A DNA stretch of 64,000 bases from Chara braunii (taxonomy: Eukaryota; Plantae; Charophyceae): contig BFEA01000029.1 of NCBI GenBank assembly GCA_003427395.1, positions 2,148,951 through 2,212,950 of the forward strand, in the 5' to 3' direction. Positions 1,287 to 64,000 of the stretch are shown one piece after another (position 1 is the stretch's first letter; each line of letters opens with the position of its first letter). A program made the position numbers and the translations under genes. The notes under the pieces are model-generated. The model did no database searches. It was given only the letters and a program-made list of their open reading frames with translations, and was not told where the DNA came from.

Positions 1287-3212
1287 ATGGCGATCCCAGC
1301 GTACTCTGAGATCATTCACATGACGAGGTATTCGAGGTGGATGGAGGAGAAGCAGAGAAGGGAGACTTGGGAGGAGACGGTCGATCGGTATTGCAAGTTC
1401 ATCAACGAGCACGTGCAGAAGCGATGTGACTACAATCTCGGCGAGTATCTGTCGAAGATCCGTAAGTTCGTTCTCGAGCAGCGTGTGATGCCATCCATGC
1501 GGTGTTTGATGACTGCCGGCCCTGCTCTAGAGAGAGAGAACCTCTGCGGGTACAACTGCTCTTACCTTCACATTGACTCAATCGAGTCCTTCGATGAGAT
1601 TCTGTACATATTGATGAACGGTGTCGGCGTCGGATTCAGCGTGGAGACGCACTATGTGGCGAAGTTGCCCCGCATTCCGGACGTCATAACGGAATCGGGT
1701 AAGGCGATACTGGTAGAAGACTCGAAAGAGGGATGGGCGAAGGCTCTGCGTGAAGTGGTCTCGGGCTTGTTCGAGGGCAAGCAGCACGGGTGGGATCTGT
1801 CGGCCATCCGGCCGCAGGGATCGAGGCTGAAGACCTTCGGTGGGCGGGCGTCTGGACCTGGTCCGCTCGACGAGATTCTGACAGTCGTCAGCGAGATAAT
1901 GACCACGGCTCGCGGTCGGCAGCTTCGACCTATCGAATGCTGTGACATGGTGTGTGTCATCGCGCGCAATGTGGCGGCTGGGGGCTCCCGAAGAAGTGCA
2001 CTGATGTGTCTCTCGTCGCTAGACGACAAGGAGATGCGTGACGCTAAGAATTTCCGCGTGCACGACCTCACTGGCAAGTCCTATCGCTTCTCGACGAACA
2101 TTTCTGTCAATTATCATTCGAAGCCAGACACAGAGAACTGGGAGGACGAGTGGAGGGCGTTGGTGGAAGGCAACTCCGGAGAGAGAGGCATCTTCTCTTC
2201 CTACGTGTGCGGCAAGAAGACTGTCAACAACAGCAAGTTAGACGGCCTTCCTGAGCGAGGCGAGCATGAGAACTACGGCACCAATCCGTGCTGCGAGATC
2301 GTGCTGAAGTCGAACCAGTGCTGCAATTTGTCTGAACTTATCGTCAGACCCGATGACACGAAGGAGTCGTTGGTGGAGAATGCGGAAGTGGCGACGGTTC
2401 TCGGCACGATCCAGTCGACGCTGACCAACTTCAATTACGTGAGGAGCAAATGGGCGGAGAATTGCGAGCAGGAGCGGCTGCTGGGAGTTTCCATGACCGG
2501 CATCCTGGACTGCAAGTGGCTGGCCCAGACGACCGAGGAGAACGCTAAATTTCTTCACACGCTCAGAAAAAAGTGCGTTAAAGTCAACGAGCTGTGGGCA
2601 GAGAGATTGGGCATCGCGCGCTCGAAGGCCATCACCTGCATCAAGCCGTCGGGGACAGTGTCGGAACTCGTTGGGACCGCCAGTGGCATTCATCCTCGGC
2701 ACTCGGAGTACTACATCCGTCGGATTAGGAACCCAATGGAAGACCCTGTCACGAAGTATCTCGTCGACCAGGGGTTCGGTGGGGAGGAAGGGGTGTATGA
2801 GAAGGGTACGTGGATTTTCAGCTTCCCGGTGAAGTCTCCGGACGGTTCCACTGTGCGGAGTCAGCTGACAGCGTTGACACACATCAAGCTGTACAAATTC
2901 TTCCAAGATAATTGGTGCCATCATAAGCCGTCGATCACCGTCACCGTCAAGCCGCATGAATGGGACGACGTCAAAGGGTTCGTATTCGACAATTTCGATC
3001 ATCTTTGTGGCATCTCGTTCCTTCCTTACGACGGCGGAAACTATCAGCAAATGCCATATGAAGAGGTTGATAAGCAGACCTACGAGAAGATGCTTCGCTG
3101 CGCGCCGAGCAGTAGAGTTAATTGGGTAGGACTGCGAAAGTACGAGAGGGTCAATGCGACCAGGGACTTGTACGAGCTCGCATGCGTGGCTGGTGGTGGG
3201 TGCGCCGAGTGA
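1287..3212 (+). CDS. nrdJ: Adenosylcobalamin-dependent ribonucleoside-triphosphate reductase (class II RNR, monomeric RTPR/NrdJ type), 641 aa, intronless
   Basis: Uninterrupted ORF with class II motifs in order: YSRW..RRETWEETVDRY, PSMR, GYNCSY, LMNGVGVGFSVE, RPQGSRLKTFGGRASGPGPL, GGSRRSA, catalytic NPCCEI, CNLSE, LLGVSMTG, TCIKPSGTVS, YYIRR, HKPSITV, GISFLP, YQQMPYEE. It ends in a C-terminal Cys pair (CVAGGGC). Confidence 0.95.
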   Translation: MAIPAYSEIIHMTRYSRWMEEKQRRETWEETVDRYCKFINEHVQKRCDYNLGEYLSKIRKFVLEQRVMPSMRCLMTAGPALERENLCGYNCSYLHIDSIESFDEILYILMNGVGVGFSVETHYVAKLPRIPDVITESGKAILVEDSKEGWAKALREVVSGLFEGKQHGWDLSAIRPQGSRLKTFGGRASGPGPLDEILTVVSEIMTTARGRQLRPIECCDMVCVIARNVAAGGSRRSALMCLSSLDDKEMRDAKNFRVHDLTGKSYRFSTNISVNYHSKPDTENWEDEWRALVEGNSGERGIFSSYVCGKKTVNNSKLDGLPERGEHENYGTNPCCEIVLKSNQCCNLSELIVRPDDTKESLVENAEVATVLGTIQSTLTNFNYVRSKWAENCEQERLLGVSMTGILDCKWLAQTTEENAKFLHTLRKKCVKVNELWAERLGIARSKAITCIKPSGTVSELVGTASGIHPRHSEYYIRRIRNPMEDPVTKYLVDQGFGGEEGVYEKGTWIFSFPVKSPDGSTVRSQLTALTHIKLYKFFQDNWCHHKPSITVTVKPHEWDDVKGFVFDNFDHLCGISFLPYDGGNYQQMPYEEVDKQTYEKMLRCAPSSRVNWVGLRKYERVNATRDLYELACVAGGGCAE

Positions 3213-7035: not shown

Positions 7036-7142
7036 AAAAAAAATCGGCCACTTTACTTTTCTCCGTGCCGGCCTTGCGCAGGGGCCATGCTAATCTTCAT
7101 CATCTGTATCGTTCCTATTTTAACGGATCTCCCCCGAAGGAC
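7036..7142 (-). pseudogene. U6: Degenerate U6 snRNA copy
   Basis: The minus strand reads GTCCTTCGGGGGAGATCCGTTAAAATAGGAACGATACAGATGATGAAGATTAGCATGGCCCCTGCGCAAGG... and ends in a T-run. The ACAGAGA box is disrupted. Confidence 0.9.
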
Positions 7143-7845
7143 GATTACTTGCTGTTCTCCTGCATTCAAACAACATTTTTATAAAATTGAAATTGAATTT
7201 CTAGAATTCGGTAAATTCTTTTTCGGTAAATTCTTTCACTGGCTGTAGGGTACAAACGTGTAAACGGTGACAACAAGCAGATGGTAGTGCACGGATCAAA
7301 AATCGTGAACGTAATTCGAGGGACGTATCTGGTCCCTGGAATTCATTGTGTTTAAATAATGTGATGATGTATTGAATTTTTTTTTTTTTTTAATTTCCAG
7401 GAACGTAAACGATAACTTAAAAGTAAGATGATGTACTGAATTCTTTTTTTTTTAAATAATTGATGGAGAACCGGCGGACTAAGGTGGGCATAATACTCAA
7501 ACGTCAGGGTCAAGGGCGTTTCGGTCGGTCGAAAAATGCCGAACTTATTAGGGTCGCCGATTTCACTGATTGGTGGGACGAAATGTAGAATTTGCTGGCG
7601 ACTTGTGGGTTGTGTTCGTCGGGATTTGTGCACGGAGGTCGTCGTGATTGGAAGAAGTGTAGATAACGGGCCTCGCTCCAGCACTCACCACGTGCGCAAG
7701 ACAAAAACATATGGCGGTGTACCTTTCCCGGTTCTGGATGAAGATTCATTCTCATTTCGCACATTTTGATGAGAGGCCCAATGACTGTTGAGGCGCCTAG
7801 CAGGCTGAGGTACTCGGCTGAGTCATTCGTAACGACGCATTAGCG

Positions 7846-12920: not shown

Positions 12921-14974
12921 TAGATCATTCCACAGGTCGGCTAATCTGACGACCCCTCGTTCTATCCAACTACAACCGAAACTGTTACGGGCTGTATCTG
13001 CTCCAAACCAGGAACCATCAGCTCTTCTGATGTGAGGATTTTCAAATATGGGCTGCAGCAAAGCTTCTGTCTTTGTAACTGGGTGGAGCCAAGAGTCAAG
13101 TTTCAGGACTTTCCAGGCATACATCACTGCCTTCCAGAAATCAGATTTAATATTTATGTTCTGGTGTGACAACAAGAGGAAGCATGTCCATACATCTGAG
13201 GGGCGAGGCAGATCCCATTCATTGGCTAAGATGGACTCAGCAAACGCAATCTACTGGGCTGGTTGCGAAGAGCACATGGCTTTGATAAACCATCGGACAA
13301 GCATTGTCAGGCTTCTACGTTGGGGGTGAGTAGGGCCCAGACCACCTTAGGTCTTTGCAAAGGTTAGCAGATCCCAGGCAACCTTTGACATAAAGGCCTC
13401 CTGATCCGATGCAAAGGGTTCCCAAATGAATTTGGTCACCCGGCGTCTGATCAGGGAGCATGAGTGTTTACCTAACGGTCTGACAGCAGCCACAAACCAC
13501 AGTAGAGCGAAAATAGCACCGTTGATTACCATTACCCGCCTATAAATAGACAAGTGAGGGGCTTTCCCCCCACAGAGAGACTCTTTGTAGTACCTTCTGG
13601 AGGATAATTCCCTCTTGATCAATCGAGCACGATAACAATGAGACTTGGACTCCGAGGAATCTTTTGAAAGAGCCTGCGTCTATGTGCTTCATACCCCGGT
13701 TGACAGTTGGAGTAAACTGGCTGGGAAGAAAGAAGACAGATTTGGCCCAGTTAACCGAGGCTCCCGATAACTCCGAGTACTCATCCAGGCAGAGTTTTAA
13801 GGCTTGTAGAGAACGAGTTATATTGCCTGAGATAGCGAACAGGTTGTTTGCTAAAGCCATAACTTTGCATTGAGAAGGGTCTGCTTGTAAACCAACTATC
13901 TCCGGATGCACCCTGATATTGCAGAGGAGGTTTTCCATTTGAGGAACAAAGAGCAAGGGAGCGAGCGGACAACCCTGGCGTAAGGAGCGGGTAAGTTGAA
14001 AAGGCTGAAACCGGTTATCGTTTACCATGATGGTTGCAATAGACAAGAAATATAGTGTCACTTTGAACCAGTTCCGAGGCTTCAATCGCTGTGACGATAT
14101 TATCGAAAATTGATCGATTCTGGACAAAGGCGGTTTGGTTGATGCCCACCAAGGCAGGTAAATACCTCCCCAAATGTCTGGCAAGGATTTTTGTCAGAAA
14201 TTTGTACGAGACATTAAGCACTAAAATCAGACGCTAGTTTGGAATCTCAGATTTGTCGCTTTTTTTATAGAGACGGGAGATAATACCATTCCGCATGCCT
14301 TTTGATAGACACCCTCCTACTAAGACATTGTTATACATGTCGACTAGGGCATCCTTCACTGAATCCCAGATTACCAGATACAGTTCCACTGAAAGACCAT
14401 CCTCTCCAGGGACCTTGCCCTTAGCCATTGCGCAGAGGGCTGCTTAAGCTTTCTCAGAAGTGATAGGGCGATCGAGATCTAGTTTTTTGTGGGAAGGCAG
14501 TCTCGCGGTGAAGGCCGCCCAATGGGACGAGGCCTCTGATAAGTCTGTGGTGGTCTTCCAGGGGGCGTCCTGTTGAGAGGATATCCTGATAGTACAGGGA
14601 GGCATATTCACACTAATCGCGTGCCTAAGGGAATAAGTGATCAAAGCGGTGGGTCAATTCACTCGTTGACAAGGTGAGTCTTTTTGGCAGGAGGCGTTGG
14701 AACGATTCCTTAGTCATTCGATCATAAACAACAATCCCTTTAACTTTAAGGCGTTCCGCCCAGACATCCGATTGTGCCTGTTGAAGCGCATCCCATTCTG
14801 CCATTCGGCGGACCCTTATGGGGCCCCATACCAGGTTGGAGATAGGATGGGCAGTAATGCGGTATTCAGCACGATCTGCCTTTGCCCGTAAATTCCTACG
14901 CTCATAACCGACTTCTCCTTGCTTGACCTTTCTCTTTTACTTCTTCACTCTAGTTGCCACGTGGCTCCGTTTGA

Positions 14975-21300: not shown

Positions 21301-24300
21301 TCCTGCTAGTAAATGAAGTGGTCAAACTAACACATAGGAATCAGGCAAACGCGACTATCATTTTTATTGACTTCGAAAAACCTACGACTTTTTAAACAAA
21401 TATTTCGACAAAATAAACTTCGGACCCGCCTTCAGGCCAGCGGTGAGGATTCTACATAGCAATGTCAGTACCTGTGTGGAGGTTAACGGGTCAGTGGCAC
21501 CCCCGTTTGAGCTTCAACGGTCGGTCAGACAAGGGGACCCTATTGCCCCCTACCTCGTTTTGGTTATAATGGAGGCACTATCCGCTAATCTAAGATACAA
21601 TAAGGACCTTACACGGATCATACCGGAGAAGGCAGTGTCGGTCTGTTCCCTCTTTGTGGATGACCTCACTATTATGGTGGAGGCGAATGCACAGAATATG
21701 GAAAAGATCCGAAATCTTATGAATCGGTTTTGCGGGATGTCAGACATAGTCGTCAATTGGGTCAAAAGACCATAGGCCGGTGGTTACATCACCAACAGGG
21801 AAGCCCCCCCGAAAACCCGCGAATTACTTGGCTTCCCCCGGATGAACCTCTCAGAATTTTGGGGGTGTTAGTTACAACAAAGGACAAGCCTGTCACCAAT
21901 GACGAGTGGCTGGCGGGCCCGGTGCAAGCCAAGCTCGCAGGGTGAAATAACAATCATACGTCAATCTTTGGGCGGACCCTTGTTATCAATAATGTAGTAC
22001 TAGCCACACTTTGGTACAAAGTCATATTATGGTCCATAAGCAACGGAGTGCTCAAGAAGCTGAAGTGGCAACTCGCGGCCTTTCTATGGAGAGGGTAGAC
22101 TGGCAACCCCCACGCCATTAGTCGGGTTGCATGGGAATCAGTGATTCAGCCTAAGGCCGAAGGGGGGTTGGAAATTGTGGATCCCTCCATACAGTTCCAG
22201 ACCCTCAACTTTCGCTGGCTTCGATACCTCATTTTCTCATCAGCCTCCCCTTGGGTCTCCCTAGCTTTGGCACAAATTGCGGCCCTAGCCCCAGAGGCCC
22301 CACCTGAGACTGACCCTCTGGTGTTGTTCGAAGACAAGTATTGGAGGCTACCAAGGAAATACAGGAACGGGGACCCCACAAATGAGTAGTGGTTGCGCCT
22401 CCTATGGATATGGAGGAAACTCCCCCCTCCAGATCGATCGACACCGGAAAGATGGGAGGAAATATTCAGACAACCCCTGTTTGGTAACAGACTGATTACA
22501 AATTTCTTTGGCCTCGTGAGGTGTAGTTCGAACCCCCCATGAAAGGGTTGGGTGAAACATGGGGCTCGGAGGGTGGGGGACCTCTGGGACAAGGACGTGA
22601 GGGAATGAAAGAGCGCATAAATAATACTTAGTTGGTTGCAGTATTGCCACTTCACAGAGGCTGCACTGAATGAGCTTATTGATAGTTTCCCCCTCCATTG
22701 GTATATCACCCTATGAAAGGGCCCTTGCTCGGAAGAAGGAGACTGGGTAGGGATACCTAGCAATGGGAAACAAGTAGGGCAAGTGCACCTAGTAGACCAA
22801 ACACAAGTGCTGATCGAAGGTTTTTTCATCTAAGAGAACGGACAACTACGAGGGAGCCGTCAACCCTTTTTTTGGAAGGAGAAATGAAGTTTATCGTGTC
22901 AGAGTAATTGACGAGGGGAGTGGTTGGAAGGCCTACTGGCCAATGACCCCGATTGAGGATCTTCCCTTCAATCCTGACGAGTGGCGTTGGTGCAGGAAAG
23001 ACCCGATAAACTCAAGAAGGGAAGGAAAGGCGAAGATGATAGCACTAACCAACCTAAAAACCAAATCAGTATACCGAATGCTCAGCTCTAAACGCAGACC
23101 GCGAAACGTAGTAGAAGGCAAATGGCATCTCAATATAGACTGTGGCCTACTTAAGCCCATAACTTGGTTTGGCGAATATGGAAATAGGCCGACAAAAATT
23201 TCTGCCCCTCAGTGGCAAATCGCTCGCGGGTGCTTGCCGACCAACGATTGGCTGATAGAGCGCACACAATTGAAGCAACAGGGGTGGACACTGCCATGGT
23301 GCCACAGTTGTCTCTAGTGCTACCTCGAAAAAAAAACACTCCGAGATGATAGAACACATCTTCCTTTACTGCCCTGCGGCCGTATTATTATGGATGTGGT
23401 GGGACAGGATTTGGTGGCAATTGGTGCCAGGTTCATTATGGCCATGGGATTGGAGGGCCATACTTCCGGGACATTACCCCCAGATGCGAGGAAATATATT
23501 CGAAAAGAACATCTTACACCTGGGTAGACGTGTCGTCCTATGGGTAATATGGTGGAGAAGGTGTATTCAGGAAGTGTATTCAGGAAATAGAGGGAGCAAT
23601 GGTGGAAGATGGGGAGGTCATGGAGCAACTACAGCTATTGGTATAGTATGAGATTACATCCCAGTGGTGGGCGACGAAGGAAAAGTTGAACCAAGTACAC
23701 ACCATGGGTGATATCAATAGAATCATCTCTAAGTTCTGCGAGGATTGGTTGGGAGGGAAGGGGGAGGGTTGGGTGGCAAAGGTGAGCAGGGAAGGAGATG
23801 GGCAACAAGAACACCAACAAGAACGTCGACAAGAGGAGGAAGTGGGTCGGTAATAGGCAGAGATTGAAAGGGACTATCAGTTGCATTTTCATGAGTGGAC
23901 ACAGGTTGACCCTAGGGACTTGTTACGACCAGCCCAGGAATTCGCAGACCCCTTCCTCCCCCACCCGTTGTCCTTGGAGGAAATGCTACATGAGTAAGTA
24001 CCCAAGCGCATCTGCCGCCATCCATAGTAAAGTCGAGCATCTCTCAGGAATTATGAAGGATGCTGAAGGATTTCTGAAAAACGAGGAACAACAATGAAAC
24101 CTCAAAACGAATGTTGGGACCAGTTCCCAACACATATCCAAGGAAAGCACAGTGAGGGATTGAGGTCAGGCGAGGAAATGGAAGGAGACTCTCATTGGTG
24201 CCCCTAGTGGCTCCTTTCGTTTTCCTGAGTCAGACCGCATGTTAGGAGTCTAAGAGGGGCAGGATGGTGGACCTGGTTTCCAGCAACGGGGTCTTTCCCG

Positions 24301-28970: not shown

Positions 28971-29994
28971 GGGGGNNNNNNNNNNNNNNNNNNNNNNNNN
29001 NNNNNNNNNNNNNNNNNNNNNNNNNNNNNNNNNNNNNNNNNNNNNNNNNNNNNNNNNNNNNNNNNNNNNNNNNNNNNNNNNNNNNNNNNNNNNNNNNNNN
29101 NNNNNNNNNNNNNNNNNNNNNNNNNNNNNNNNNNNNNNNNNNNNNNNNNNNNNNNNNNNNNNNNNNNNNNNNNNNNNNNNNNNNNNNNNNNNNNNNNNNN
29201 NNNNNNNNNNNNNNNNNNNNNNNNNNNNNNNNNNNNNNNNNNNNNNNNNNNNNNNNNNNNNNNNNNNNNNNNNNNNNNNNNNNNNNNNNNNNNNNNNNNN
29301 NNNNNNNNNNNNNNNNNNNNNNNNNNNNNNNNNNNNNNNNNNNNNNNNNNNNNNNNNNNNNNNNNNNNNNNNNNNNNNNNNNNNNNNNNNNNNNNNNNNN
29401 NNNNNNNNNNNNNNNNNNNNNNNNNNNNNNNNNNNNNNNNNNNNNNNNNNNNNNNNNNNNNNNNNNNNNNNNNNNNNNNNNNNNNNNNNNNNNNNNNNNN
29501 NNNNNNNNNNNNNNNNNNNNNNNNNNNNNNNNNNNNNNNNNNNNNNNNNNNNNNNNNNNNNNNNNNNNNNNNNNNNNNNNNNNNNNNNNNNNNNNNNNNN
29601 NNNNNNNNNNNNNNNNNNNNNNNNNNNNNNNNNNNNNNNNNNNNNNNNNNNNNNNNNNNNNNNNNNNNNNNNNNNNNNNNNNNNNNNNNNNNNNNNNNNN
29701 NNNNNNNNNNNNNNNNNNNNNNNNNNNNNNNNNNNNNNNNNNNNNNNNNNNNNNNNNNNNNNNNNNNNNNNNNNNNNNNNNNNNNNNNNNNNNNNNNNNN
29801 NNNNNNNNNNNNNNNNNNNNNNNNNNNNNNNNNNNNNNNNNNNNNNNNNNNNNNNNNNNNNNNNNNNNNNNNNNNNNNNNNNNNNNNNNNNNNNNNNNNG
29901 CGCGAGCGCGAGCGCGAGCGCGCGCGCGCGCGCGCAGCTCCCCGCGCCGCGCTGCGCAGCCCCCCAAGCAGCTCCCCACGCAGCTCCCTCTCTC

Positions 29995-30097: not shown

Positions 30098-33050
30098 NTC
30101 TCACACACACACACACACACACACTCACTCACTCACTCACTCACAATCAATCAATCAATCAATCAATCAATATCAATCAATCAAACCTTTTTTTTTTTCA
30201 AGTTTTTTGTTTATTTATTTTTAAATTTTGCATTTTTATTTTTCTAACATACCTCATACCCCTGCAAAAAATAGAAATTCATTTCTCAAAAATACAGGTG
30301 AACTTAGGGACCATATATCTGATGATAAAAAATGGCAAAAAAAAAATCCAGCTTTTCTTTATATTTTGTTTTTAATTTTCTTTAAATCGAATTTAGTTTT
30401 TGATTTTTAAAAAATCCTAAACAAAGTCGGATTCCCAAAACAAAAATATGGGGTTGTAGGGCTTAAATTTCCCTACAACCTTTTTTTTTTTTTTTTTGGC
30501 GGGGGGCTATTATTTAAATCATGAAAAATCTGGTAAAATCGGGTCCGAGGCGCGGAGGCGGCCGTGAATACGTCCGCCCTCTGAGCTCGGCCTTGCGGAC
30601 GCGTCCGCGGGTGTTTCATAGCCAGAGACGGACGAGACAAATTCGAAGCTAGTCAACCTTCGGTTTAACTTGGATCCACCGACAAGGGAAAACATGAAAG
30701 ATAAGATCTGGATCCCGACCCACCAGGGCGATTTGTTGGAAGTTCGAATGGCGTCGGCAGAATCCGAATGGTGCAAGAGGTGCCACACTTTCTTCCATCT
30801 GGAAGAAAACTGCAGACGCAGCAATCGACAAAATCAAGGCGACGCAACATCAAGACCCCAGCAAGCCTCCTCGGCACATGCTGCGGGTGGCTTCACCCGT
30901 CCGTCGTATCAAGGCCCCCTCGAGGCCCCAGGCACAACCACTCGTCAGGACGTGTCCGCAAACTCATCAGCTCCAGCAGCCACTGCTCAACCAACTGTTC
31001 AGCCAGAAGTTCCACCGGGCTCCACATCTGAACTCAGCCCTATCTTCTCCTTAGGAGTTACTGTGTGCCAACCGATGCAGGGCACGGTCTTCCAAGGCAA
31101 TGTGACATCAGGTCAACCAAACCCATGGGCGGCCTTCTTCCAAAATATGTAGATGCACCCATTTGCATGGCAACAAGCTCAAACGCACCTCGATCCAACC
31201 CTGATGGGTAACCCATCCTTCGTCAACCTCCATGCCTATGCTCGGTGGAATCAAACCCTTGGAGGCCAAGGCGGTTCCAACTTGGCTGGTGGGTCAAGAA
31301 TCAACAACTCCAACGACCCCCCATCTAGAACTGCTGCGTTGGGCCCTAGCGGCTTCCACGTACGAGGAGAATCCCCCAGCAAATAACGACGAGTGAGCGA
31401 TGCAGGCGGAATCGACATTCAGGTGGACGGACTCCAGCCCGATCCTTCCGCCACCTCCAGTGAGGGTTCATACCATTCTTTTATCTCCGGCGGCCCACGT
31501 GGCAATGCCACCTCATCAGGTAAACGTAAATCGCATCGTCCCCGTACTGACGCCCTTTCGAAAGGCCAATCAGTGTTGGAAACCAAGCTTCTCTCCATAG
31601 TCTGTGTCTATGTTAGGAACACCTTTTGGGTTGGTGCTTGGACTGGATCAGATGGAACCCCATGGTTGTTTAACACTTCCTGTCCCGATCCCCCAATGCC
31701 CCATGCTAAAGAATCGATGTCTTGTACTTTATTCCAAAACAAATTCACCTTGCGAATCATCGCTGAGGTGAGTCAGGTCTCTATGCCCCGCTCCCTGGTT
31801 GATGTTGCAGGAAAACAGGCGAAGTTTTTTGCCCCGCTGTTCGATGGCGGTTTTATTACAGGACAACTAGAACAGTTGGAGTCTGAAGGCCTTTGCCTCA
31901 TCCCCTTTGTATGATTTCAAAGCCAGGAAACTTGAGCTACGCCGTATTCGCATCTCCCCAGTATTAACTGTCGAGTTGCTATACGAACTGGATGCAAAGC
32001 TCCTGAAAGAGCGAAAATTGGATTCCTCTTTCCTCAAGCAATCCCTTACTGACCCATGGCTGGTAATACAAGTCCCGGTTCAACAAGCCGCCCGTATCCG
32101 ACAACCCTCAGGGGCCGCTCCGGTGAATGGGTAAACTTAATGTTGCCATGTAGAATGTTCGGGGCCTTAGGGACACAACAGGCAGGAACAAGCGAGGCAG
32201 GTTAAAAAGTTGGATCCATGATTAGAAATTCGACATTGCCTGTGTTCAAGAGACTAAGTTATCGGAAGAGAAGATCGGGGACTTAGGATTATGGTGGGAC
32301 GCACCCCAAATATGGTTCCCAACCGTAGGTTCGAGAGGCGGGGTCGCAATCCTCCTCCATAGGAACTCTGATTTTGAAATCATCAACTACTATGATGATC
32401 TCTAGGGTAGATGGGTCTGGGTAAAGTATGGATAAAAGACCGGGAATGGGTAGCTGCGACTGTCTATGCTCCAGTTGACTGTTCAGATCGCAAGCGTTTT
32501 TTCTATGATCTACCTTCCATGATTCCACAATTTGAGAACCTGATTGTCACCGGAGATTGAAATACTTCCCAAGACAAGCAAGAGGGAGTGCGAGGTCACT
32601 CACACGTGAGTGTGCTTTTGGAAACGATTTCGGATTTGGACCTTGTGGAGCCATATCGTCTCATGCACCCAGATTCCCTGGTTTCACCTGGTTCTCGAAT
32701 GTACGAGAAGGAATAGGGGTAATGCATAGACGACTAGATTTCTTTCTTGTCTCCCCCGACACATGGAATGTCACGGTAATGGTAGAAGAGTCGTTTCACC
32801 CCATGTCTGACCATAAGCCAGTGACTGTCACTTTCAACTCCACGAAACCAACCAGAGGCCCCGACTACTTTAGGGTCAATACACAGATTTTGGTAGAATC
32901 AGGGATAGTGGACTGGATGACACGCTTCTGGGAGGACTTAAACTCGAATGCTGATTACTTTAAGTCCAAAGCTGAGTGGTAGGATGCAGGTTCCCACATC
33001 TTATCCAAACACCTCAGCGTCTTCTCTCGCATCCTAGCGGTCGGGCAAAA
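27714..33050 (+). mobile_element. 3'-truncated L1-like LINE (5'UTR, ORF1 with CCHC knuckle, APE endonuclease)
   Basis: ORF1 CKRCHTFFHLEENC. Endonuclease NVRGL, QETKL, GGVAIL, FTW, RRLDFFLVS, SDHKPV. No RT is present. Confidence 0.9.
28650..30621. mobile_element. Non-autonomous TIR DNA transposon with an 8-bp TSD (hAT/P-like), microsatellite-filled, spanning an N gap
   Basis: TIRs CTATGAA...TTCATAG, with TSD CCAGAGAC at 28642-28649 and 30622-30629. Removing it restores host ORF1 (HQPET/DETNSKL). Confidence 0.9.
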
Positions 33051-33084
33051 AAAACAAGAACTCACTTTAATTAAAAAAAATCAA

Positions 33085-33715
33085 TTTTCTCACCTGCTGC
33101 GGATCTTTGTCAAAGTTTGGAGCCCCACCGAGATGGCTATGTTGCACCTACCTCTCTCCGTCCCTTTTCCTGCTGCTTCCCAGCTATGGCTTTTGCATCC
33201 GCTTTTCCTTTTTTTCGGTCAGCTCCCCCCCCTCCACCATGTCGTTCGTCCTCCCCTTCATGCAGCTTCGCTTCGGCAGTTGTCTCTCGCTGATACCAAC
33301 GAAAACCTGCTGCGTCACGTGCGCTAAGCGAGCGTCAATCGGTATTTTTCAAGTAAAACGTATTGATTGAATATTTTTCCTTCGGTTGAATTTGTATTTT
33401 AACAGTTCATGAATGTTTGTCAGACTTTCGATCCATTAAGTATGCAATTTCACATTGGCTGATCCGATAGCAGCCCCCCTTTCCCCCCCCTCCCCCTCCC
33501 TCTTCCTGTCTGTCTCTGAGTATGGTCTCCAACAGTTGCCGAAGATGCTCATACATAGACTCGCCCTAAATGCATGGGCCTTGGAGGCGTGGGCCTGTGG
33601 CACTGGCACTGAGGAATTGGACTTTGTCTCATTGCTTTAGCAAAGGTGGGAAGCTATAAGAGACAGAAAAAGGGTCAGTATGGCTTTGCCCGCATGACAA
33701 AGCAGGTCAGTTTAT
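33085..33715. repeat. Dispersed non-coding repeat; inverted homolog at about 56575-57170
   Basis: Extended collinear similarity, for example gccccaccgagatggctatg vs catagccatctcggtgggg. Confidence 0.9.
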
Positions 33716-36599: not shown

Positions 36600-37985
36600 T
36601 GTCATGGCGAGGTTTCCCACCTTGTACCCTTGAGACTCTGTAGGGAGTACCGTATTCGAGGTACTCTAGATCTCAATGGGTACAACCCATATTTGCTTTT
36701 TTATCAGCTAAATGATAATCGGTCATGCCCTAAGTAGCTCAGCAACGCTGCCACAACCACGAGTAGGTCTCCCACTACCTCCAGTCGTTCCGTTGCCTCC
36801 TACGAATAAGCCCAGTATAGATACCAAAGGAGAATAACTTAGCAAGGAACTATCAGGTGTGTTACAAACTAGAGGTGACCAAGCAAAGGAACGAACACCA
36901 ATAATCCAAGTTACACCGTAATGAAGCCAAGCAACAGAAGAAACACCAACAATCTAAATTCACACCATAGTGAAGCCAAGCAACAGAAAAAGCACCAACA
37001 CTCTAAGTTCACACCGTAGTGAAGCCAAGCAACAAAAAGAGCACCAACACTCTAAGTTCACACTGTAGTGAAGCCAACCTCCGACAAATATTTTGTTCCT
37101 TCAACGGAGAGGGGTGTGCTAGCGAGCGTGGTACAACTAGAGCCTGGAGATGGAGGGGAGCAGGGATCTAGTCTGTCAATCCGGTCAGATGCAAAACGCG
37201 AAGAAAACTACACTACAGCCCAAGCTAGAGGAGAAATAGGAAACAGACCTATGAATTCGGTTGCAAACAAACCAGCGTACTGATGTCAACAGGCGAGGAC
37301 GAGAGATGAGCAACAACGCGTGCAATCAGTGAGGGGGCAGCAGTCGGAGTTATCCAGGATTAAGAATTTTGAGGAGCCGATGCAATACTAATAGCCTAGC
37401 AATTGGCAAGTTATGGGCCTACCATGTTTGTGAGAGGAAAAAGGGGTGAATCCAGCCATAGAAAGGGACTGAATACAGGCCGTTGGAAACGAGAAGAGCA
37501 ACCAAGATTAGGTTCGAAGTCCCAGAGAGTGGCACAAATGGCTTATAGAAGGGAAGGTAATTCCACGTTCGAAGGAACAAAGAAACGGCTCAGATAAGGA
37601 GGAGCCGGTATACCTAAAGCAGGGAAGGGTAGATAAAGTGAATGTCTCTACGTGTCATCGTGACCTCCGGTCGAGACTAATGCTCTGGTCCCTTTGCACT
37701 ACTGGAAACGCTCCCACGACCACCAGTGAAACTCCTACTCCCCAAAGGTGACGTTGTCCTGTAAAGCTTCAAGTCTTCTCTCACTTCGAGTCTCCACGCT
37801 CCCGGTTGAGGTAGTCGCTAGTACTTGGCTTGTGCTCCTCACAACAGCAGTCCCACCACTACCAGTTGCCCTCCCACTGCTCCCGGAAGTGCCGCTGTCT
37901 GACTCACCATTCACCGTGCACTGGACTCACTCTCCCTTCTTTGTGCCGTTGGTCATGTATGTTTCCCAAAAACGGGGTTCATACA
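36600..37985. mobile_element. Solo LTR (1386 bp)
   Basis: Termini TGTCATG...CATACA, with 5-bp flanks GGGGT/GAGGT (a TSD with one mismatch). Internal tandem repeats of about 48 bp at 36880-37075. Confidence 0.8.
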
Positions 37986-41260: not shown

Positions 41261-42446
41261 TGCAATGAACGCGGAAGGTACGAGTGCCTGTCCCCCAAAA
41301 CTAACCGAAAATTTTAAAAAGGGTAACGAATGCAATGCACGGGAAAGGGAGCGAACGAAAAATTGGATCGGCCAATGAACTGAAAAAAAAAAAGAAAAGA
41401 AGAAAGAATGATGATTGATGATTGGACTTTAACTTAGTGATTGGACGAATCGAATGGACAGAACTGAATGTACTGACGACTGAAACCAAAGTCGTGAAAC
41501 TGGAAAGATCGGTTGGTAGAATGGATTCGGTTGTTTTTTGGGTTCATTTTGCTTATTTTTATTCATTTTTTTTGCTATTTTTTGTTCATTTTGCTGACTT
41601 TTTTCATTCATTTTTCTATTACTGGTAAGTGTAATCCATTTAATTAGTATAATATTGCAAATCAAAATCTACTATAAACGAGTAAATATATCATTAAATA
41701 GCATACTTGCCCTATGCGAATGCGCTGGCTTTCACTTCCTTGTGGCACCGGCCATTGAAGGAGGAGACCGGCGACAGATTGAAATTAGAGTCGCATTCTG
41801 CGATGCCGTGGCGCTCAAGCTGAACGCGTACATGCGATGCGCCAGGAGGACACGCTTTTAGTTCTCTTTCCTTTCTCTCTTTACCTACATCCACGCGGGA
41901 GGCCTTGTACGCAAGAGGTTCTGAACAGGGGGAGTCTTGTAAGGAAGAAGATTTTAAATAAATGAAAGTATTTTTCTTTTTTTTTTTCTGTTTTCCTTTC
42001 GCTTTTGCGCTCTGACAACTTTGTGACAATATATATCGGGCAGCCAGCGCTCAACCTGTCATCCACGTGGCTGGTCTTGTACGTTAGAGGTGATGAACAG
42101 GCGGAGCTTTCCTTCCTCCTTTCCTTTTTTTGGTTTTGTCTCTTTTCGCCTTTGCGCTCCGATTTACAGTGTGACAATATATCGTCAAACAGATATGTAC
42201 GCGTGTGTACGTATCTATATGTGCGTGTACCTGGTCATAGAGAACTGCTCGATGCAGCATAGGCAGAAATGGAGAATATGATACAGGAACGGAGGGCTTT
42301 TACTTGTCCTCCCTCTCTCTCCATGTGTGCATGTATATAGGCAAATATAATATATATATTATTTGTATGTATATATATCGTCGAACAGAGCTGCCCAGTA
42401 AACCGTAGGTAGAGAGGGAGAAGTGGACAACAAACGAGGGGTTGTG

Positions 42447-42496
42447 ACAAACTGTTTCGTCGGACTTTTACCGACTCATCAGGAGGCTGATTCCTA
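42447..42496 (-). ncRNA. Hammerhead ribozyme core, 5'-truncated near the predicted cleavage site, within a short repeat (42375-42496)
   Basis: The minus strand reads AGG-AATCAG-CCTC-CTGATGA-GTCGG-TAAAAGT-CCGAC-GAAA-CAGTTTGT. Confidence 0.8.
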
Positions 42497-42941
42497 TATG
42501 TATATGTATATATATAAAAAACTGTCCTCGTGTTTCTTATTTTCTCTCGTTTTTGACGTGTCCACTTTCACCCTTCTTTTGAACGTTGCTGACGTGGGAG
42601 CATGTTTCCCGCCATTTTAAAGTCGAAAGATTACGGCGGGAAACTCGTCTGAAGTCTAGTGACACCCCGACCTGACCCTCAAGGAAGTACAGTAATAAAT
42701 GAATAAAAGACAGCGGAAAGGTATGATCACAAACAAAGAGAGAGAGAGAGAGAGAGATTCCAGGGCGTCTTGGAATGGCACGTGGAGGGAAAGTGGACGT
42801 ACATTATTTTTTTAAATTATAGTTGAGCTAAACGATGCAACAAACAAATTGCGTCCGCAGCTGGATTGTGGGCCGCAATATTATTGCCTTTTTTTGGTGA
42901 AAAAAATTGCGGGCCTTTTTTCTTTGTGTTTTTTTTTTTTA

Positions 42942-43060
42942 AGGTACAGCACGGGGATTTCCCTGGAAGTCACCCATCCCAGTAATATTCCGGCCCAACG
43001 GCGCTTCGCTTCCGAGCTCGGATGGGATCGGGCGCATCAGCCGTTGTATGACCGTACCGT
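42942..43060 (-). rRNA. 5S: Full-length 5S rRNA copy, 119 nt (possibly a pseudogene)
   Basis: The minus strand reads ACGGTACGGTCATACAACGGCTGATGCGCCCGATCCCATCCGAGCTCGGAAGCGAAGCGCCGTTGGGCCGGAATATTACTGGGATGGGTGACTTCCAGGGAAATCCCCGTGCTGTACCT. It is followed by an A-run, not a T terminator. Confidence 0.93.
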
Positions 43061-53668: not shown

Positions 53669-55988
53669 NNNNNNNNNNNNNNNNNNNNNNNNNNNNNNNN
53701 NNNNNNNNNNNNNNNNNNNNNNNNNNNNNNNNNNNNNNNNNNNNNNNNNNNNNNNNNNNNNNNNNNNNNNNNNNNNNNNNNNNNNNNNNNNNNNNNNNNN
53801 NNNNNNNNNNNNNNNNNNNNNNNNNNNNNNNNNNNNNNNNNNNNNNNNNNNNNNNNNNNNNNNNNNNNNNNNNNNNNNNNNNNNNNNNNNNNNNNNNNNN
53901 NNNNNNNNNNNNNNNNNNNNNNNNNNNNNNNNNNNNNNNNNNNNNNNNNNNNNNNNNNNNNNNNNNNNNNNNNNNNNNNNNNNNNNNNNNNNNNNNNNNN
54001 NNNNNNNNNNNNNNNNNNNNNNNNNNNNNNNNNNNNNNNNNNNNNNNNNNNNNNNNNNNNNNNNNNNNNNNNNNNNNNNNNNNNNNNNNNNNNNNNNNNN
54101 NNNNNNNNNNNNNNNNNNNNNNNNNNNNNNNNNNNNNNNNNNNNNNNNNNNNNNNNNNNNNNNNNNNNNNNNNNNNNNNNNNNNNNNNNNNNNNNNNNNN
54201 NNNNNNNNNNNNNNNNNNNNNNNNNNNNNNNNNNNNNNNNNNNNNNNNNNNNNNNNNNNNNNNNNNNNNNNNNNNNNNNNNNNNNNNNNNNNNNNNNNNN
54301 NNNNNNNNNNNNNNNNNNNNNNNNNNNNNNNNNNNNNNNNNNNNNNNNNNNNNNNNNNNNNNNNNNNNNNNNNNNNNNNNNNNNNNNNNNNNNNNNNNNN
54401 NNNNNNNNNNNNNNNNNNNNNNNNNNNNNNNNNNNNNNNNNNNNNNNNNNNNNNNNNNNNNNNNNNNNNNNNNNNNNNNNNNNNNNNNNNNNNNNNNNNN
54501 NNNNNNNNNNNNNNNNNNNNNNNNNNNNNNNNNNNNNNNNNNNNNNNNNNNNNNNNNNNNNNNNNNNNNNNNNNNNNNNNNNNNNNNNNNNNNNNNNNNN
54601 NNNNNNNNNNNNNNNNNNNNNNNNNNNNNNNNNNNNNNNNNNNNNNNNNNNNNNTCTCTCTTTGTGTGTGTGTGTGTGTGTGTGTGTACCTTGTGATGTT
54701 GGTTTGGATGTTGTAAATCAGAGACGATACACAGCGCCTTGAGATTCTCTGGGAGCTCAATCCGTCCTGCCTAGCGTGTCATTTCATTAAAAAAAAAAAA
54801 AAAAAAAGGCACTGCTGGTACCCAAGCGCATGTGGCGGAATGGTACACAGTGCTTCACTCGCATGTAACTGCTGCTAATCAATACAAGCGAAAAAAAAAA
54901 GAGCCTGCTGTGCTGGTACCCAAACTCGATTCCTGGGGGGGGAAAGGGGGAAAGAGCAAACCAGATTGATACAATAAGGTTATGGTCTACTGCCTTCAGA
55001 ACAAAAAACGAATTCAAAAAGAAAGGAAGAAATGGTGCAGCACGCGTCTTAATTGTAGTGTCACTTCCCACGCAGCCACCTCTGAAATGCTGCATGCGGC
55101 ACACAGTCCTCAAGCAGTCACACTCTTCATGTCCTTGTGCCTCAAGCAGCCTTTGTGACGCGCTCTTCATGTTTCATCTGTACCTAATGAATGTTTCAAG
55201 TAGATTGCATGTGCAGAGTCTCTCTGCTATTTTCTTTAGGCTGACTCAAGACCCAGCCACATGTATTGTCATATATGCGTGCCAGCGCTGCTCTCTCCCT
55301 GGCATCAACATTCGCTGGGCCGGAGCACATTATTAGATCAGATCATGTTTTGACCACGCAGACAGTGCCGAGGGCTTTGCTGGGAGAAAAACAGGACTTT
55401 TCCACATCTAAAGGCCTTGCTCCACGACACATCATTCTAGACCAGGTGCATTTGGGCGCTTCCTGGACCAGGTGCATTTGGACAAGTCCAACATTTTGAA
55501 TGTATGAGGTCCAGAGAGCATCCATTGGAAATGCATGTAAACTTTTGAAGTATTTTGTAGTGGAGCAAGGTCAATATCCTGCATGCCATTGCATGATGTG
55601 TTTGTCTACGATCTACAACAAACTCCTAAAGCTAAGTGGGTCGCGGAGGGAACCCTGCGTGCCGATAACTTTCCTTTTCGGTGACTTCTGGCCTTAAGAT
55701 GTCGATTCGGAGGGTTGGGATTGCCCAAAACGGTGGTTTCTAACGAAATGTGTCCGGGCCTACCTGGTCGACACGTGGTTCTCTGTGGGATTAGCTTTTG
55801 GGCCGGAAATACGGTGTTGTGCCCTTCGATAGAGCGTTGTTGAATGGTGTTTGCTTTAAGTGCGGCGCGATCTGTGTTGGAGATTGTCAGAGGATTGAGG
55901 TGGTGCCGGTTTTTTCCCCAAATGCTGTCAGAAGGCACTGCCATTTTTTTCCCTCTTTTGCGAGAATTGAGCCCTCGCGGAGCCCTTC

Positions 55989-61200: not shown

Positions 61201-62870
61201 TGACGCAAGACCAAATGAATCTCAAAGTCAGGAAGTCAGCGCTTATGTAGCGTTGACGCGGGGTCTGGACCCCGGATACTGTATCCCTCAGCCGTCAAGA
61301 TCTCAATGCAAATGACGGCCCAGATTGGCCTGAAACCGAATTCCTTCTGGCCTTGATGCTGTCTGGGTACCTGCGCACAACAAGTGAGTGTATCCGACCA
61401 AGGGCCTGGGCGCAGTACCTTTGACCTGACAGTTGACTTAGACTTTTGACTTCCCAGGGGCAGTGTGTGGCCACACTGCCTGGCGCAGAACGAGTTTGGC
61501 CTGCATCGTCTGGGCTCCATTTCGATGGCCCAGACTGCTGCAGAACACGGGTTACTGCACCCCCGCCCCTAACCCCCCAAACCTGCAGCCATCACGCCAG
61601 GAACAGGATCAGCACACTCCCCCACCATCGGATATCCAACACACACAACTAGAAAAAGGGGGTGGAGTGGAAACTGCGGAGGAGGGGATGACCTCGCGAC
61701 CACTCAATTTGCGGCAGCTCATTGAACGGGGCCTCTTTGAGCTGCCTCTCTCCAAAACGGAAGGTGTGCTGGTGATTCCAACGAGGAAGACCAAAGGGAA
61801 ATGGAAAATTGGTCTCTTCCCGGTGGGAGAAAATGGGGGCGTGACATTGTAGGGTTGGGACTTCCCGGCCCATATCGGGGATGTGAAGGAAAGAGACAAG
61901 ACCTTTACGAACCAAATGCGCGCCTTTATCCCCGAACACTATGCACCAGGGGCGAGAGCAGCCATTGGATTTGAAAGTTGCAACCAGCAAATGGCCAGGA
62001 ATGACCTCTACATGTTGTTTGAACCTAACAAAACTACCAAACTTACGATGGTACTGCCACAACACATTACTGGACCTGCAGTGCGCAAAAATGAAAGCCA
62101 ATAACTTCTGGTCGGGCGATGATGTTTGCAAATGCTTGTGCAGAATTGTGCAGAAGAGGGTCCTGAGCCTAGACAAATGGGATGTCAAACAGTGCATACC
62201 CTGTGAGTATACCCCGACCCAAAAGAAGGGAACACCTATATTGCAGAAACCCTGCCTGGCAGCAATGTGTAAGAAAGGCGGACCTGGACTTGTGCTCCAT
62301 CAACGTAAATGGGTTGGCATCCAGTAAACCTGAGAAATGCCAAGCCATTTGGGACCAACTCAGAGGGGTGGGAAGTAGGCGGCAGCCGGACTTGATATGT
62401 GTGCAGGAGACCCACCTGCAGGACAGCCCGGAGAATAACAATGCCCATAAGATGGTCTGGCCTCGCTCGGTCGTAAGAGCTCATGCCCCTAGGCCAGGTT
62501 CAGCAGGGGTAGCGATTTAGATCTCCCCCCCATTCCAGATTCCAGTTGGTCCACTGGGTGGCAGATGAGAGGGGCGGTGCGTCTCAATGTTGGGGATGCT
62601 GGAATTGGAATTACTTTCCATACTTTGCATCTATTCCCCCAATATGGTCGGAGAAAGAATAACCTTTTTGCTGAATCTAGGAACACAGGTACCCGAAGGC
62701 ATCTCATTAGTTATAGCAGGGGATTTTAACCCCACCCCCGATAGGAGACTGGATAGATGGAACCCTCAGGGGATCCCCCCTTTTGCTGTCGACGAAGATG
62801 AGCGAATGGTAGCAGAACTGTGCGAAACTCTCCCCGCCTTCGACTCCTTCCGCCGTCTGCACCCAGAGAA
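58300..62870 (+). mobile_element. 3'-truncated paralog of the LINE at 15330-24600 (ORF1 and APE endonuclease start)
   Basis: Collinear with 15330-20150. Contains CFKCQAYGH, a Gln-rich tract, SINVNGL, VQETHL, SAGVAI and IAGDFN. The 5' boundary is uncertain. Confidence 0.9.
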
Positions 62871-63062
62871 GGTCACAGGGTGTTGGTACATTGTCCTGCT
62901 GCAGCATGGGGCCAGAAGAATGATCTTTGGCATAAAAGAGATTGCGGACAGTTTGGTGTGGCAAGAAAACAGCATCATTATGTAAGAAATCAGTAACATC
63001 AGTCATGGCATGGACCATGATGCCGTTATCCCACAACTTCCAGTGGTCAGAGGTATGTATGT

Positions 63063-63935
63063 ATATCGCCCAACAGAACTGCTCGGTAAACCGTCAGCAG
63101 AGAAGGAGAAGAGGACAACAAACGAGGGGCTGTGAAGAACTGTTTCGTCGGAGTTTCATCGACTCATATAACGCTATATTGACGATATATATCATCAAAC
63201 AGAGCTGCACGGTAAAACATAGGCAGAGAGGGAGAAGAGGACAAGAAACGAGAGGCTGTGACAAACTGTTTATATATATATACATATATATATCCATCTG
63301 GTGTGGGTGAGTGATAGCCTGCTTTGATTTTTGTCACGGGTTCCTTAAGGGCAGTGGTTGGTGCCCACCTCAAGGTATCAGTTGTGGGGCAGTCATTGAT
63401 GCTTAACCACAACTGGGGTTAAGGTGGATTATCACTTACAGTGTAATCAGTTAGGGGATTCTGCAGACTGTTGAGGGTTCAGCCTGCTGACGAGTCCATG
63501 AAACTCCAACGAAACAGTTTGTTAGAGCCCCTCGTTTCTTGCCCTCTTCTCCCTTTCTGCCTACGGTTTACCAGGCAGTTCTGTTTGATGATATATCGTC
63601 ACAAACAGAACTGCCCGGTAAACCGTAGGCAGAGAGAGAGAAGAGGACAACAAACGAGGGGCTGTGTATATTGTCACATAATATATATTATATATTGTCA
63701 CATAATATATATATATATATAATATATATATATATACTCCAACGAAACAATTTGTCACAGCCCCTCGTTTGTTGTCCTCTTCTCCCTCTCTGCCTACGGT
63801 TTACTGGGCAGCTCTGTTGGACTATATATATCGTCAAATAGAACTGCCCGGTAAACCGTAGGCAGAGAGGGAGAAGAGGACAACAAACGAGGGGCTGTGA
63901 CAAACTGTTTCGTCGGAGTTTCACCGACTCATTTG
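63063..63935. repeat. Cluster of about 6 direct and inverted partial copies of the hammerhead-associated repeat in TA-rich tracts
   Basis: Module cagaactgcccggtaaaccgtaggcagagagggagaagaggacaacaaacgaggggctgtgacaaactgtttcgtcggagtttcaccgactcat. Confidence 0.93.
63463..63522 (+). ncRNA. Type III hammerhead ribozyme, complete topology, decayed copy
   Basis: GCAGACTGT-T^GAGG-GTTCAG-CCTG-CTGACGA-GTCCA-TGAAACT-CCAAC-GAA-ACAGTTTGT. Stem III has 9 bp including G-U pairs. Stem II is intact (GTCGG/CCGAC) in sister copies. Confidence 0.8.
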
Positions 63936-64000
63936 TCACATAACTATGAACTAAAAGAGCGCAATTTGCGAAACAAACGGTAAAAAAAAAGAAAAAAAGA

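Follow-up and report, generated by a model that had tools for sequence, protein, structure and literature searches.

What are the short repeats that accompany the TA-rich tracts of a 64,000-nt stretch of the Chara braunii genome (GCA_003427395.1, contig BFEA01000029.1, hereafter the window), do they encode a hammerhead ribozyme, and how did they spread? The original prediction had combined several of these repeats into a complete type III hammerhead and had read them as parts of a ribozyme-bearing retroelement of an alga; the host is indeed an alga, and both the consensus and the insertion signature described below support that reading. The window also has a class II ribonucleotide reductase ORF at its start.

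Copies of the element in the window

To define the family, we compared the window with its longest copy by blastn self-comparison and found eight related pieces. Sequence data from the same organism, two DNA runs in the form of Logan contigs and two RNA-seq runs prepared with oligo-dT, were also aligned to this longest copy at 80% likeness. This gave about 7,000 contigs per DNA run and 4,367 and 10,564 RNA reads, and from these the genome-wide majority sequence was read. The copies are as follows, with consensus positions where the piece is partial.

63296-63600, + strand: longest copy, about 300 nt, with (TA)n at either side; the sole window copy that spans the complete hammerhead region
42373-42495, - strand: consensus positions 179-301; stem I, an intact CUGAUGA, a 5-bp stem II and GAAA
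63826-63932, - strand: consensus positions 195-301; 99% identity to the majority sequence; begins within CUGAUGA at A6
63062-63167, - strand: consensus positions 195-300; 5' truncation point A6, as in 63826-63932
63187-63271, - strand: consensus positions 217-301; begins at the core GAAAC
63587-63666, - strand: consensus positions 228-305, the tail alone; tail-to-tail with 63296-63600 over 6 nt of TA
63736-63829, + strand: consensus positions 208-301; begins within hammerhead loop 2; tail-to-tail with 63826-63932
42234-42303, - strand: older, diverged tail fragment, about 71% identity

The copy positions given in the original prediction proved correct, and the self-comparison added the further copies. 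The prediction had described the copies as short, partial, present in both orientations and embedded in TA-rich tracts, which matches the alignment of the eight copies and the survey of TA tracts. Apart from the older copy, the window copies are 91-99% identical to the majority sequence (92.8% for 63296-63600, which departs from the majority at 22 letters and is covered over its full length by DNA contigs and RNA reads, and 91.9% for 42373-42495), and the family is therefore young. Among the window copies, 63296-63600 alone has the cleavage site and the 5' strand of stem III, and stem I with the CUGANGA box occurs only in this copy and in 42373-42495. A diverged copy considered at 37320-37385 was rejected, as nothing was found there. 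No copy was found in the locus 8.7 kb upstream of the window, and metagenome scans returned no match with either the hammerhead or the tail as query.

The majority sequence is a canonical type III hammerhead

The hammerhead region of the longest copy comprises the following elements.

63463-63522, + strand: type III hammerhead, degenerate in copy 63296-63600
63463-63471 with 63514-63522, + strand: stem III
63470-63472, + strand: cleavage triplet GUU, with the predicted cut between 63472 and 63473
63473-63476 with 63483-63486, + strand: stem I
63487-63493, + strand: CUGANGA core
63494-63498 with 63506-63510, + strand: stem II
63511-63513, + strand: GAA

In this local copy stem II is down to 2 bp and the 1.1-2.1 pair is G-G. 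Each departure of this copy from a hammerhead is mended by the genome-wide majority letter, which has a share of 82-99% in the DNA contigs. Both DNA runs and both RNA runs agree on five such positions:

63486: local G, majority C
63491: local C, majority T
63497: local C, majority G
63498: local A, majority G
63508: local A, majority G

Together these letters give CCUC-CUGAUGA-GUCGG...CCGAC, and in the read alignment no variant is listed in the remaining core or in the loops, either in DNA or in RNA. Directly past the motif the majority also differs from the local copy, with T to C at 63523 and G to C at 63525. The majority sequence is a canonical type III hammerhead of three helices, in which stems I (4 bp) and II (5 bp) are closed by loops and stem III (9 bp) is open, with a CUGAUGA/GAAA core and a GUU triplet that agrees with NUH. 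The conserved core CUGANGA...GAAA with its A15.1-U16.1 pair is present in the majority sequence, at 63463-63522 and at 42449-42499.

The composite hammerhead of the original prediction was thus reproduced independently by the majority letters of two DNA and two RNA runs, and the genome-wide consensus retains the CUGANGA box, stem I and the upstream strand of stem III. Some details of that prediction have to be amended. The GTTG at the cleavage site had been taken for a GUC lost through CpG decay; GUU is instead the family consensus, and at 63472 the only variant listed at the 10% threshold is T>A, which reaches it among RNA reads alone, with no C or G in DNA or RNA. The complete copy had also been credited with two defects, and we found four disruptive changes.

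A strict descriptor for type III hammerheads, which demands CUGANGA, GAAA, an H other than G and stems of 4, 5 and 9 bp, accepts the majority 60-mer and finds no match on either strand of the window itself or of 50 window shuffles. The minimum free energy fold of the 60-mer is the three-way junction, at -22.2 kcal/mol (z = -2.8 against shuffles). Scoring with Rfam Hammerhead_3 (RF00008), which the original prediction had proposed, gave at a relaxed threshold 24.2 bits for 63465-63520 on the + strand (E 0.0017 over 106 nt) and 18.6 bits for 42449-42499 on the - strand, within copy 42373-42495; no window sequence reaches the gathering score of 48.5 bits, and these scores are those of decayed copies, not of the majority sequence. 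At the gathering threshold the whole window yielded U6 and 5S alone. The miRNA-like Rfam matches that appear at 63515-63908 under an E-value threshold were discarded as artefacts of inverted copy pairs. None of the window copies is intact, and they are probably dead relics.

The complementarity of loop 1 (UUCA) to loop 2 (UGAA), which had been pointed out before, is present in the sequence, with about 5% expected by chance on a rough estimate; it gains no support from covariation, as the window copies aligned for this purpose are too few and too uniform, and 42373-42495, the sole copy with differing loops, does not have the complementarity. The family is very uniform: within the motif the only polymorphism of at least 10% in DNA is G/A at 63463, opposite U, which keeps the pairing. 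Counted in the same way, the hammerhead (60 nt) has one polymorphic site, the tail (74 nt) four and the upstream domain (167 nt) at least ten, so that the hammerhead is the least polymorphic portion of the element.

Other modules of the element

The majority 305-mer folds into three modules, a 5' rod, the hammerhead and a 3' tail. The modules outside the hammerhead were defined on this fold.

63307-63439, + strand: 5' hairpin domain, with a 25-bp stem (63307-63331 with 63415-63439) and a branched apex
63523-63596, + strand: 3' tail module, with a pyrimidine-rich stretch, an 8-bp hairpin at 63557-63578 and a terminal ...GUUUGAYGAUAUAU running into (TA)n

The tail module is common to all eight copies. 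In the fold the hammerhead is lengthened by a GAGGGG/CCCCUC helix (63452-63457 with 63528-63533). A frequent deletion variant joins 63331 to 63417 and takes out exactly the apex of the rod; this joint is present in DNA contigs and also in 44 and 273 RNA reads. Five single-site polymorphisms at paired positions (63321, 63373, 63426, 63435 and 63463) all keep the pairing, and two adjacent pairs are candidate compensatory doubles with matched DNA frequencies on their two sides, G-C to A-U at 63333/63413 (3.3% and 3.5%) and U-A to C-G at 63334/63412 (37% and 48%). These pairing-preserving changes suggest selection on the RNA structure, to which they lend modest evidence, the fold being drawn from the same consensus. 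A tRNA-derived SINE head was considered and rejected: no tRNA was found in 62000-64000, and the B-box-like string of the local copy is gone in the majority sequence.

Ends of the copies and insertion in (TA)n tracts

All eight copies end at consensus positions 300-305 with ...GTTCTGTTTGAYGA, followed by TA repeats, and their 5' ends lie at consensus positions 1, 179, 195, 195, 208, 217, 226 and 228. TA-rich sequence adjoins six of seven 5' junctions. The window holds three TA-rich tracts (at least 14 of 16 positions matching), and all three directly adjoin copies.

63267-63294: (TA)n tract, between two facing 5' ends
63703-63738: (TA)n tract, adjoining the 5' end of 63736-63829
42495-42518: TA-rich tract, adjoining the 5' end of 42373-42495

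The same end structure is seen in the reads. Among DNA contigs, the loose ends with the most support fall at 63587 and 63596 and continue into (TA)n (59 and 214 contigs in X1; 50, 50 and 219 in X3), with the same ends in RNA reads, and the 5' loose ends of the DNA contigs are scattered. Contig depth shows no monotonic fall toward the 5' end, which counts against the explanation favoured below. Among the best-supported loose ends, of DNA or of RNA, there is no pile-up at 63473, the first nucleotide after the predicted cut. Copy 42373-42495 begins only 1 nt within the predicted cleavage product, and its 5' end was considered as a sign of a cleaved template; we rejected this reading, as such a coincidence is expected by chance in an estimated 16% or so of cases among seven truncated copies.

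Copies are frequently joined to one another. At four tail-to-tail joints the 3' ends are separated by only a few shared TA units:

63178-63199, 63587-63600 and 63818-63840: joints with 6-8 nt of TA
42168-42193: joint with fewer

Head-to-head pairs are also present, and three 11-mers are reverse complements of a variant 3' terminus, forming "mini" copies of 10-15 nt that adjoin the 5' ends of longer copies. The idea of a strict alternation of piece orientation was given up once these mini fragments were oriented. One DNA contig carries a tail, ATATA and a 5' domain joined head-to-tail, which fits either a tandem insertion or a circular template.

Target-primed reverse transcription typically leaves copies that share one 3' end and are truncated at varying points on the 5' side. 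Both features, like the (TA)n flanks, are directly observed here and point to this mechanism, probably starting from the 3' end of the RNA, and they support the retroelement reading of the original prediction. As (TA)n is self-complementary, the 3'-OH of a nicked tract, including that of the TA tail of an earlier copy, could anneal to (UA)n in either orientation, which would explain both the nests and the mixed orientations of the copies.

Transcription of the family

The 4,367 and 10,564 RNA reads on the element show a 5:1 strand bias across the hammerhead and the tail; provided that the libraries are stranded in the usual way, the strand in excess is the ribozyme-sense RNA. About 60% of the reads continue into unrelated sequence, indicating that most copies are transcribed as part of longer transcripts. 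The ratio of depth upstream to depth downstream of the cut is 0.11 (X21) and 0.16 (X22) on the predominant strand and 0.40 (X21) and 0.64 (X22) on the opposite strand, a depletion 3.6-4 times stronger on the former. This strand-biased depletion is compatible with self-cleavage followed by oligo-dT selection, and equally with a few highly expressed truncated copies; a truncated-copy junction at 63501 is covered by 302 and 446 RNA reads. There is no pile-up of RNA read starts at 63473 in the oligo-dT RNA-seq, a result that neither supports nor rules out self-cleavage. The original prediction had also proposed to look for circular RNA junction reads; none of the joints listed is an RNA-supported back-joint, which likewise neither shows nor rules out circular RNA.

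Origin of the family

We consider it probable (about 70%) that these repeats form a young, very abundant, short non-coding retroelement family of C. braunii that carries a hammerhead and is linked to Penelope-like elements. The unit would be about 215-300 nt long, and its RNA would consist of a 5' rod-like hairpin domain, the type III hammerhead, whose predicted cut follows GUU and leaves about 125 nt on the 3' side, and a 3' tail module that closes with ...GACGA(UA)n. For new copies to arise, a nick within a genomic (TA)n tract would prime reverse transcription from the (UA)n end of the RNA, and such insertion would yield a constant 3' end, variable 5' truncation, both orientations and copies nested in TA tails. 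A Chlamys-type Penelope-like element with an N-terminal GIY-YIG may provide the reverse transcriptase and endonuclease, whether in cis or in trans, and the family would be its 3' terminal module or a non-autonomous derivative of it. The ribozyme would then trim read-through or tandem transcripts to unit length, which may permit circularisation. It counts against this explanation that a linear cleaved RNA cannot transmit a working ribozyme, because after cleavage the 3' product lacks the 5' strand of stem III.

A relative of Penelope-like elements is the most likely identity on the grounds of host, architecture and literature, and not of sequence identity. It counts against it that the hammerhead is of type III whereas the published hammerheads of Penelope-like elements are of type I, and that the flanks are (TA)n, which has been reported for Naiads, versus the (CA)n and (C)n reported for Chlamys. 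The Rfam scores under the gathering score and the lack of a read-start pile-up at 63473 or of an RNA-supported back-joint among the joints listed also speak against the favoured explanation. A linked reverse transcriptase or GIY-YIG ORF, which the original prediction had suggested looking for, has no counterpart in the window: there is no Penelope-like ORF but LINE-like fragments only, and Pfam analysis of 26 ORFs detected no Penelope-type reverse transcriptase and no GIY-YIG domain, the sole matches to a reverse transcriptase being LINE-like RVT_1. An AP-endonuclease-like motif was also seen.

The LINE fragments, together with the lack of a linked Penelope-like ORF, would also suit a SINE-like element moved by a (TA)n-specific LINE that acquired its hammerhead independently, and stringent LINE/SINE pairs show just as typically a constant 3' end, 5' truncation and a tail that resembles a microsatellite. 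We regard this as unlikely, given that C. braunii has documented hammerhead-bearing Penelope-like elements and that we found no LINE with a type III hammerhead described in the literature. An origin of the copies as solo LTRs, or as pieces of an LTR retrozyme of the plant type, a Gypsy-mobilised element with a type III hammerhead in LTRs of 300-400 bp, is very unlikely: the ribozyme type and the unit of about 300 nt are those of angiosperm retrozymes, but a solo LTR is fixed at both ends and has target duplications of 4 bp, and the Chara copies share no more than a fixed 3' end, with varying 5' ends and a position within (TA)n. Moreover, the window contains no pair of direct repeats around a centre with a primer-binding site or polypurine tract, and the purine-rich run is carried by the strand opposite the ribozyme.

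The hammerhead could also be a relic with no function at present, or a chance look-alike, within an otherwise ordinary repeat, as might be argued from the damaged window copies, their Rfam scores under the threshold, the missing read-start pile-up at the cleavage site and the fact that hammerhead-less Penelope-like elements proliferate well (Craig et al., PMC8557442). Against this stand a majority motif that is perfect, with every core nucleotide present and no equal in any of the 50 shuffles, the low polymorphism of the hammerhead relative to the rest of the element and the strand difference in RNA depletion upstream of the cut, and we hold a relic or look-alike to be highly improbable. The long perfect hairpins formed by tail-to-tail pairs, which gave rise to the miRNA-like Rfam matches, recall a foldback element or a MITE-type DNA transposon that targets TA, as Stowaway-type MITEs do, with the inverted pairs as its terminal inverted repeats. 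In the Chara copies the inner ends are constant and the outer ends variable, opposite to what terminal inverted repeats would show; the two arms differ in length (305 versus 80 nt), and the copies at 42373-42495 and 63062-63167 are single and unpaired, so that this origin is hardly credible.

Comparison with known hammerhead-bearing elements

The Penelope-linked family that we favour has its closest described counterparts in the same host. Craig, Yushenova, Rodriguez and Arkhipova (2021) reported three types of Chlamys Penelope-like elements in C. braunii, including Chlamys-2_cBra, which has a canonical 3' hammerhead and a gag-like ORF1 with a zinc knuckle, and the PLE-X type also has canonical hammerheads (PMC8557442). 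Chlamys elements reach high copy numbers, are frequently 5' truncated and form tandem and inverted compound insertions, with a strong microsatellite bias, to (CA)n and (C)n in Chlamys and to (TA)n in Naiads; their non-autonomous derivatives, such as MRC1 of Chlamydomonas, keep the 3' end (PMC8557442). The family described here shares with them the host, a hammerhead near the 3' end, 5' truncation, compound tandem and inverted insertions, microsatellite insertion bias and high copy number. The fixed 3' end and frequent 5' truncation expected of a Penelope derivative are found both in the window copies and in the read ends, and the microsatellite bias and compound insertions are found in the TA tracts, the joints and the head-to-tail contig. 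The comparison is by description only: the text of PMC8557442 gives no hammerhead type or (TA)n target for the Chara families and describes no short hammerhead family of 215-300 nt for Chara, and we found no further link between Chara and hammerheads in the literature beyond this paper. The suggestion in the original prediction that the element was possibly undescribed is accordingly too strong, and the surprise is limited, since hammerhead-bearing Penelope-like elements were already known from C. braunii.

Angiosperm LTR retrozymes carry type III hammerheads (Cervera, Urbina and de la Pena 2016, PMC4918200) and resemble the Chara family in this ribozyme type, in its closed loops 1 and 2, in a non-coding RNA predicted to be highly structured and in their occurrence in the green lineage. 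Their ribozyme, however, resides in two LTRs of 300-400 bp placed around a primer-binding site and a polypurine tract, and the elements have target duplications of 4 bp (PMC4918200). The Chara family has no LTR pairs, a single fixed 3' end, a (TA)n tail and variable 5' truncation, and it does not belong to the LTR retrozymes of the angiosperm type.

The hammerheads of Penelope-like elements in Cervera and de la Pena (2014) are of type I (PMC4209133). Metazoan non-LTR retrozymes and the pseudo-LTR hammerheads of Penelope-like elements are, like the Chara repeats, short non-coding units, of 170-400 nt in their case, and the metazoan units have been proposed as non-autonomous derivatives of the termini of Penelope-like elements (PMC4209133; bioRxiv 10.64898/2026.07.22.740005). 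They differ in their ribozymes, which are of type I, often minimal and active as dimers, and in their head-to-tail tandem arrays (same sources); the Chara ribozyme is monomeric, of type III and equipped with a stem III of 9 bp, its copies occur dispersed or nested within (TA)n, and no head-to-tail array of full units exists in the window. The Penelope-like elements Naiad and Neptune share with the Chara family a preference for (TA)n microsatellites as target (Craig et al. 2021, PMC8557442); unlike it, they occur in animals, and Naiads are without canonical hammerheads.

The abundance of the family is relevant to the annotation of the Chara genome, as thousands of contigs match it in a 1.2-Gb run, and the family may create or lengthen most TA microsatellites locally. 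Current sorting of hammerhead retroelements places plant LTR retrozymes, with type III ribozymes, on one side and animal non-LTR retrozymes and Penelope-like termini, with type I, on the other. By combining a monomeric ribozyme of type III with insertion that is primed at (TA)n and follows a non-LTR mode, the Chara family falls outside this two-class scheme, and the combination bears on the origin of plant retrozyme and viroid-type hammerheads. It is conceivable, if rather doubtful, that the family represents a third kind of retrozyme, monomeric, of type III, non-LTR, microsatellite-targeting and Penelope-mobilised, in which a TA-to-TA unit cycles via a self-cleaved circular RNA. Were this so, the family would connect Penelope-like hammerheads to those of type III in angiosperm LTR retrozymes and in viroid-like RNAs, because its host belongs to the algal sister lineage of land plants. 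Among known systems, the family fits best into the Penelope-like/retrozyme group of hammerhead carriers, as a new and very abundant member.

A recurrent 11-mer and inverted copies of the hammerhead family

Within the group of copies near 63 kb of the short, (TA)n-embedded retroelement family with a hammerhead ribozyme, one 11-mer has three exact occurrences (63671-63681, 63695-63705 and 63933-63943) and is confined to this cluster. Read on the opposite strand, it matches a variant form of the family 3' terminus (..GTGACAATATA), and its sites look like abortive copies of 10-15 nt, or like sequence added by template jumping where longer copies have their 5' junctions. The segment 42168-42180 was grouped with these three sites.

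Many miRNA precursor families in Rfam gave strong but sub-threshold matches (≤64 bits) to 63515-63908. These matches are produced by tail-to-tail inverted pairs, in which two copies face each other with their 3' ends across a few TA units; in this window they are annotation artefacts. The inverted pairs themselves could serve as input to small-RNA pathways.

Other features of the window

The remaining annotated features are as follows.

1287-3212, plus strand, intronless ORF for a B12-dependent class II ribonucleotide reductase
7037-7143, minus strand, U6 snRNA gene (Rfam, 72 bits)
13543-14193, minus strand, LINE remnant
21371-21772, plus strand, LINE remnant
28976-29899, assembly gap of about 1 kb, run of N
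30622-33324, plus strand, LINE remnant
42941-43059, minus strand, 5S rRNA gene (Rfam, 83.5 bits)
53669-54654, assembly gap of about 1 kb, run of N

The reductase shows about 50% identity to thousands of metagenome-derived, bacterial-type proteins and is surrounded by eukaryotic repeats on a 5.3-Mb Chara braunii scaffold; this streptophyte alga may thus carry a gene that came from bacteria. The U6 gene carries 4 nt inserted immediately 3' of ACAGA in the Rfam alignment, and could be either a variant gene or a pseudogene. The 5S gene lies about 450 nt from the hammerhead copy at 42373-42495. The LINE remnants comprise two RVT_1 fragments, an AP-endonuclease-like SDH motif and an ORF with a CCHC-like pattern, which was found by a regular-expression scan and had no Pfam match. 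Long ORFs overlapping in three frames at the two assembly gaps are due to the runs of N.

Small shares of 62600-63600 also occur in sequencing runs that carry the labels of two further organisms, B and C; relatives may have the hammerhead family, or else the neighbouring gene, in common with this genome.
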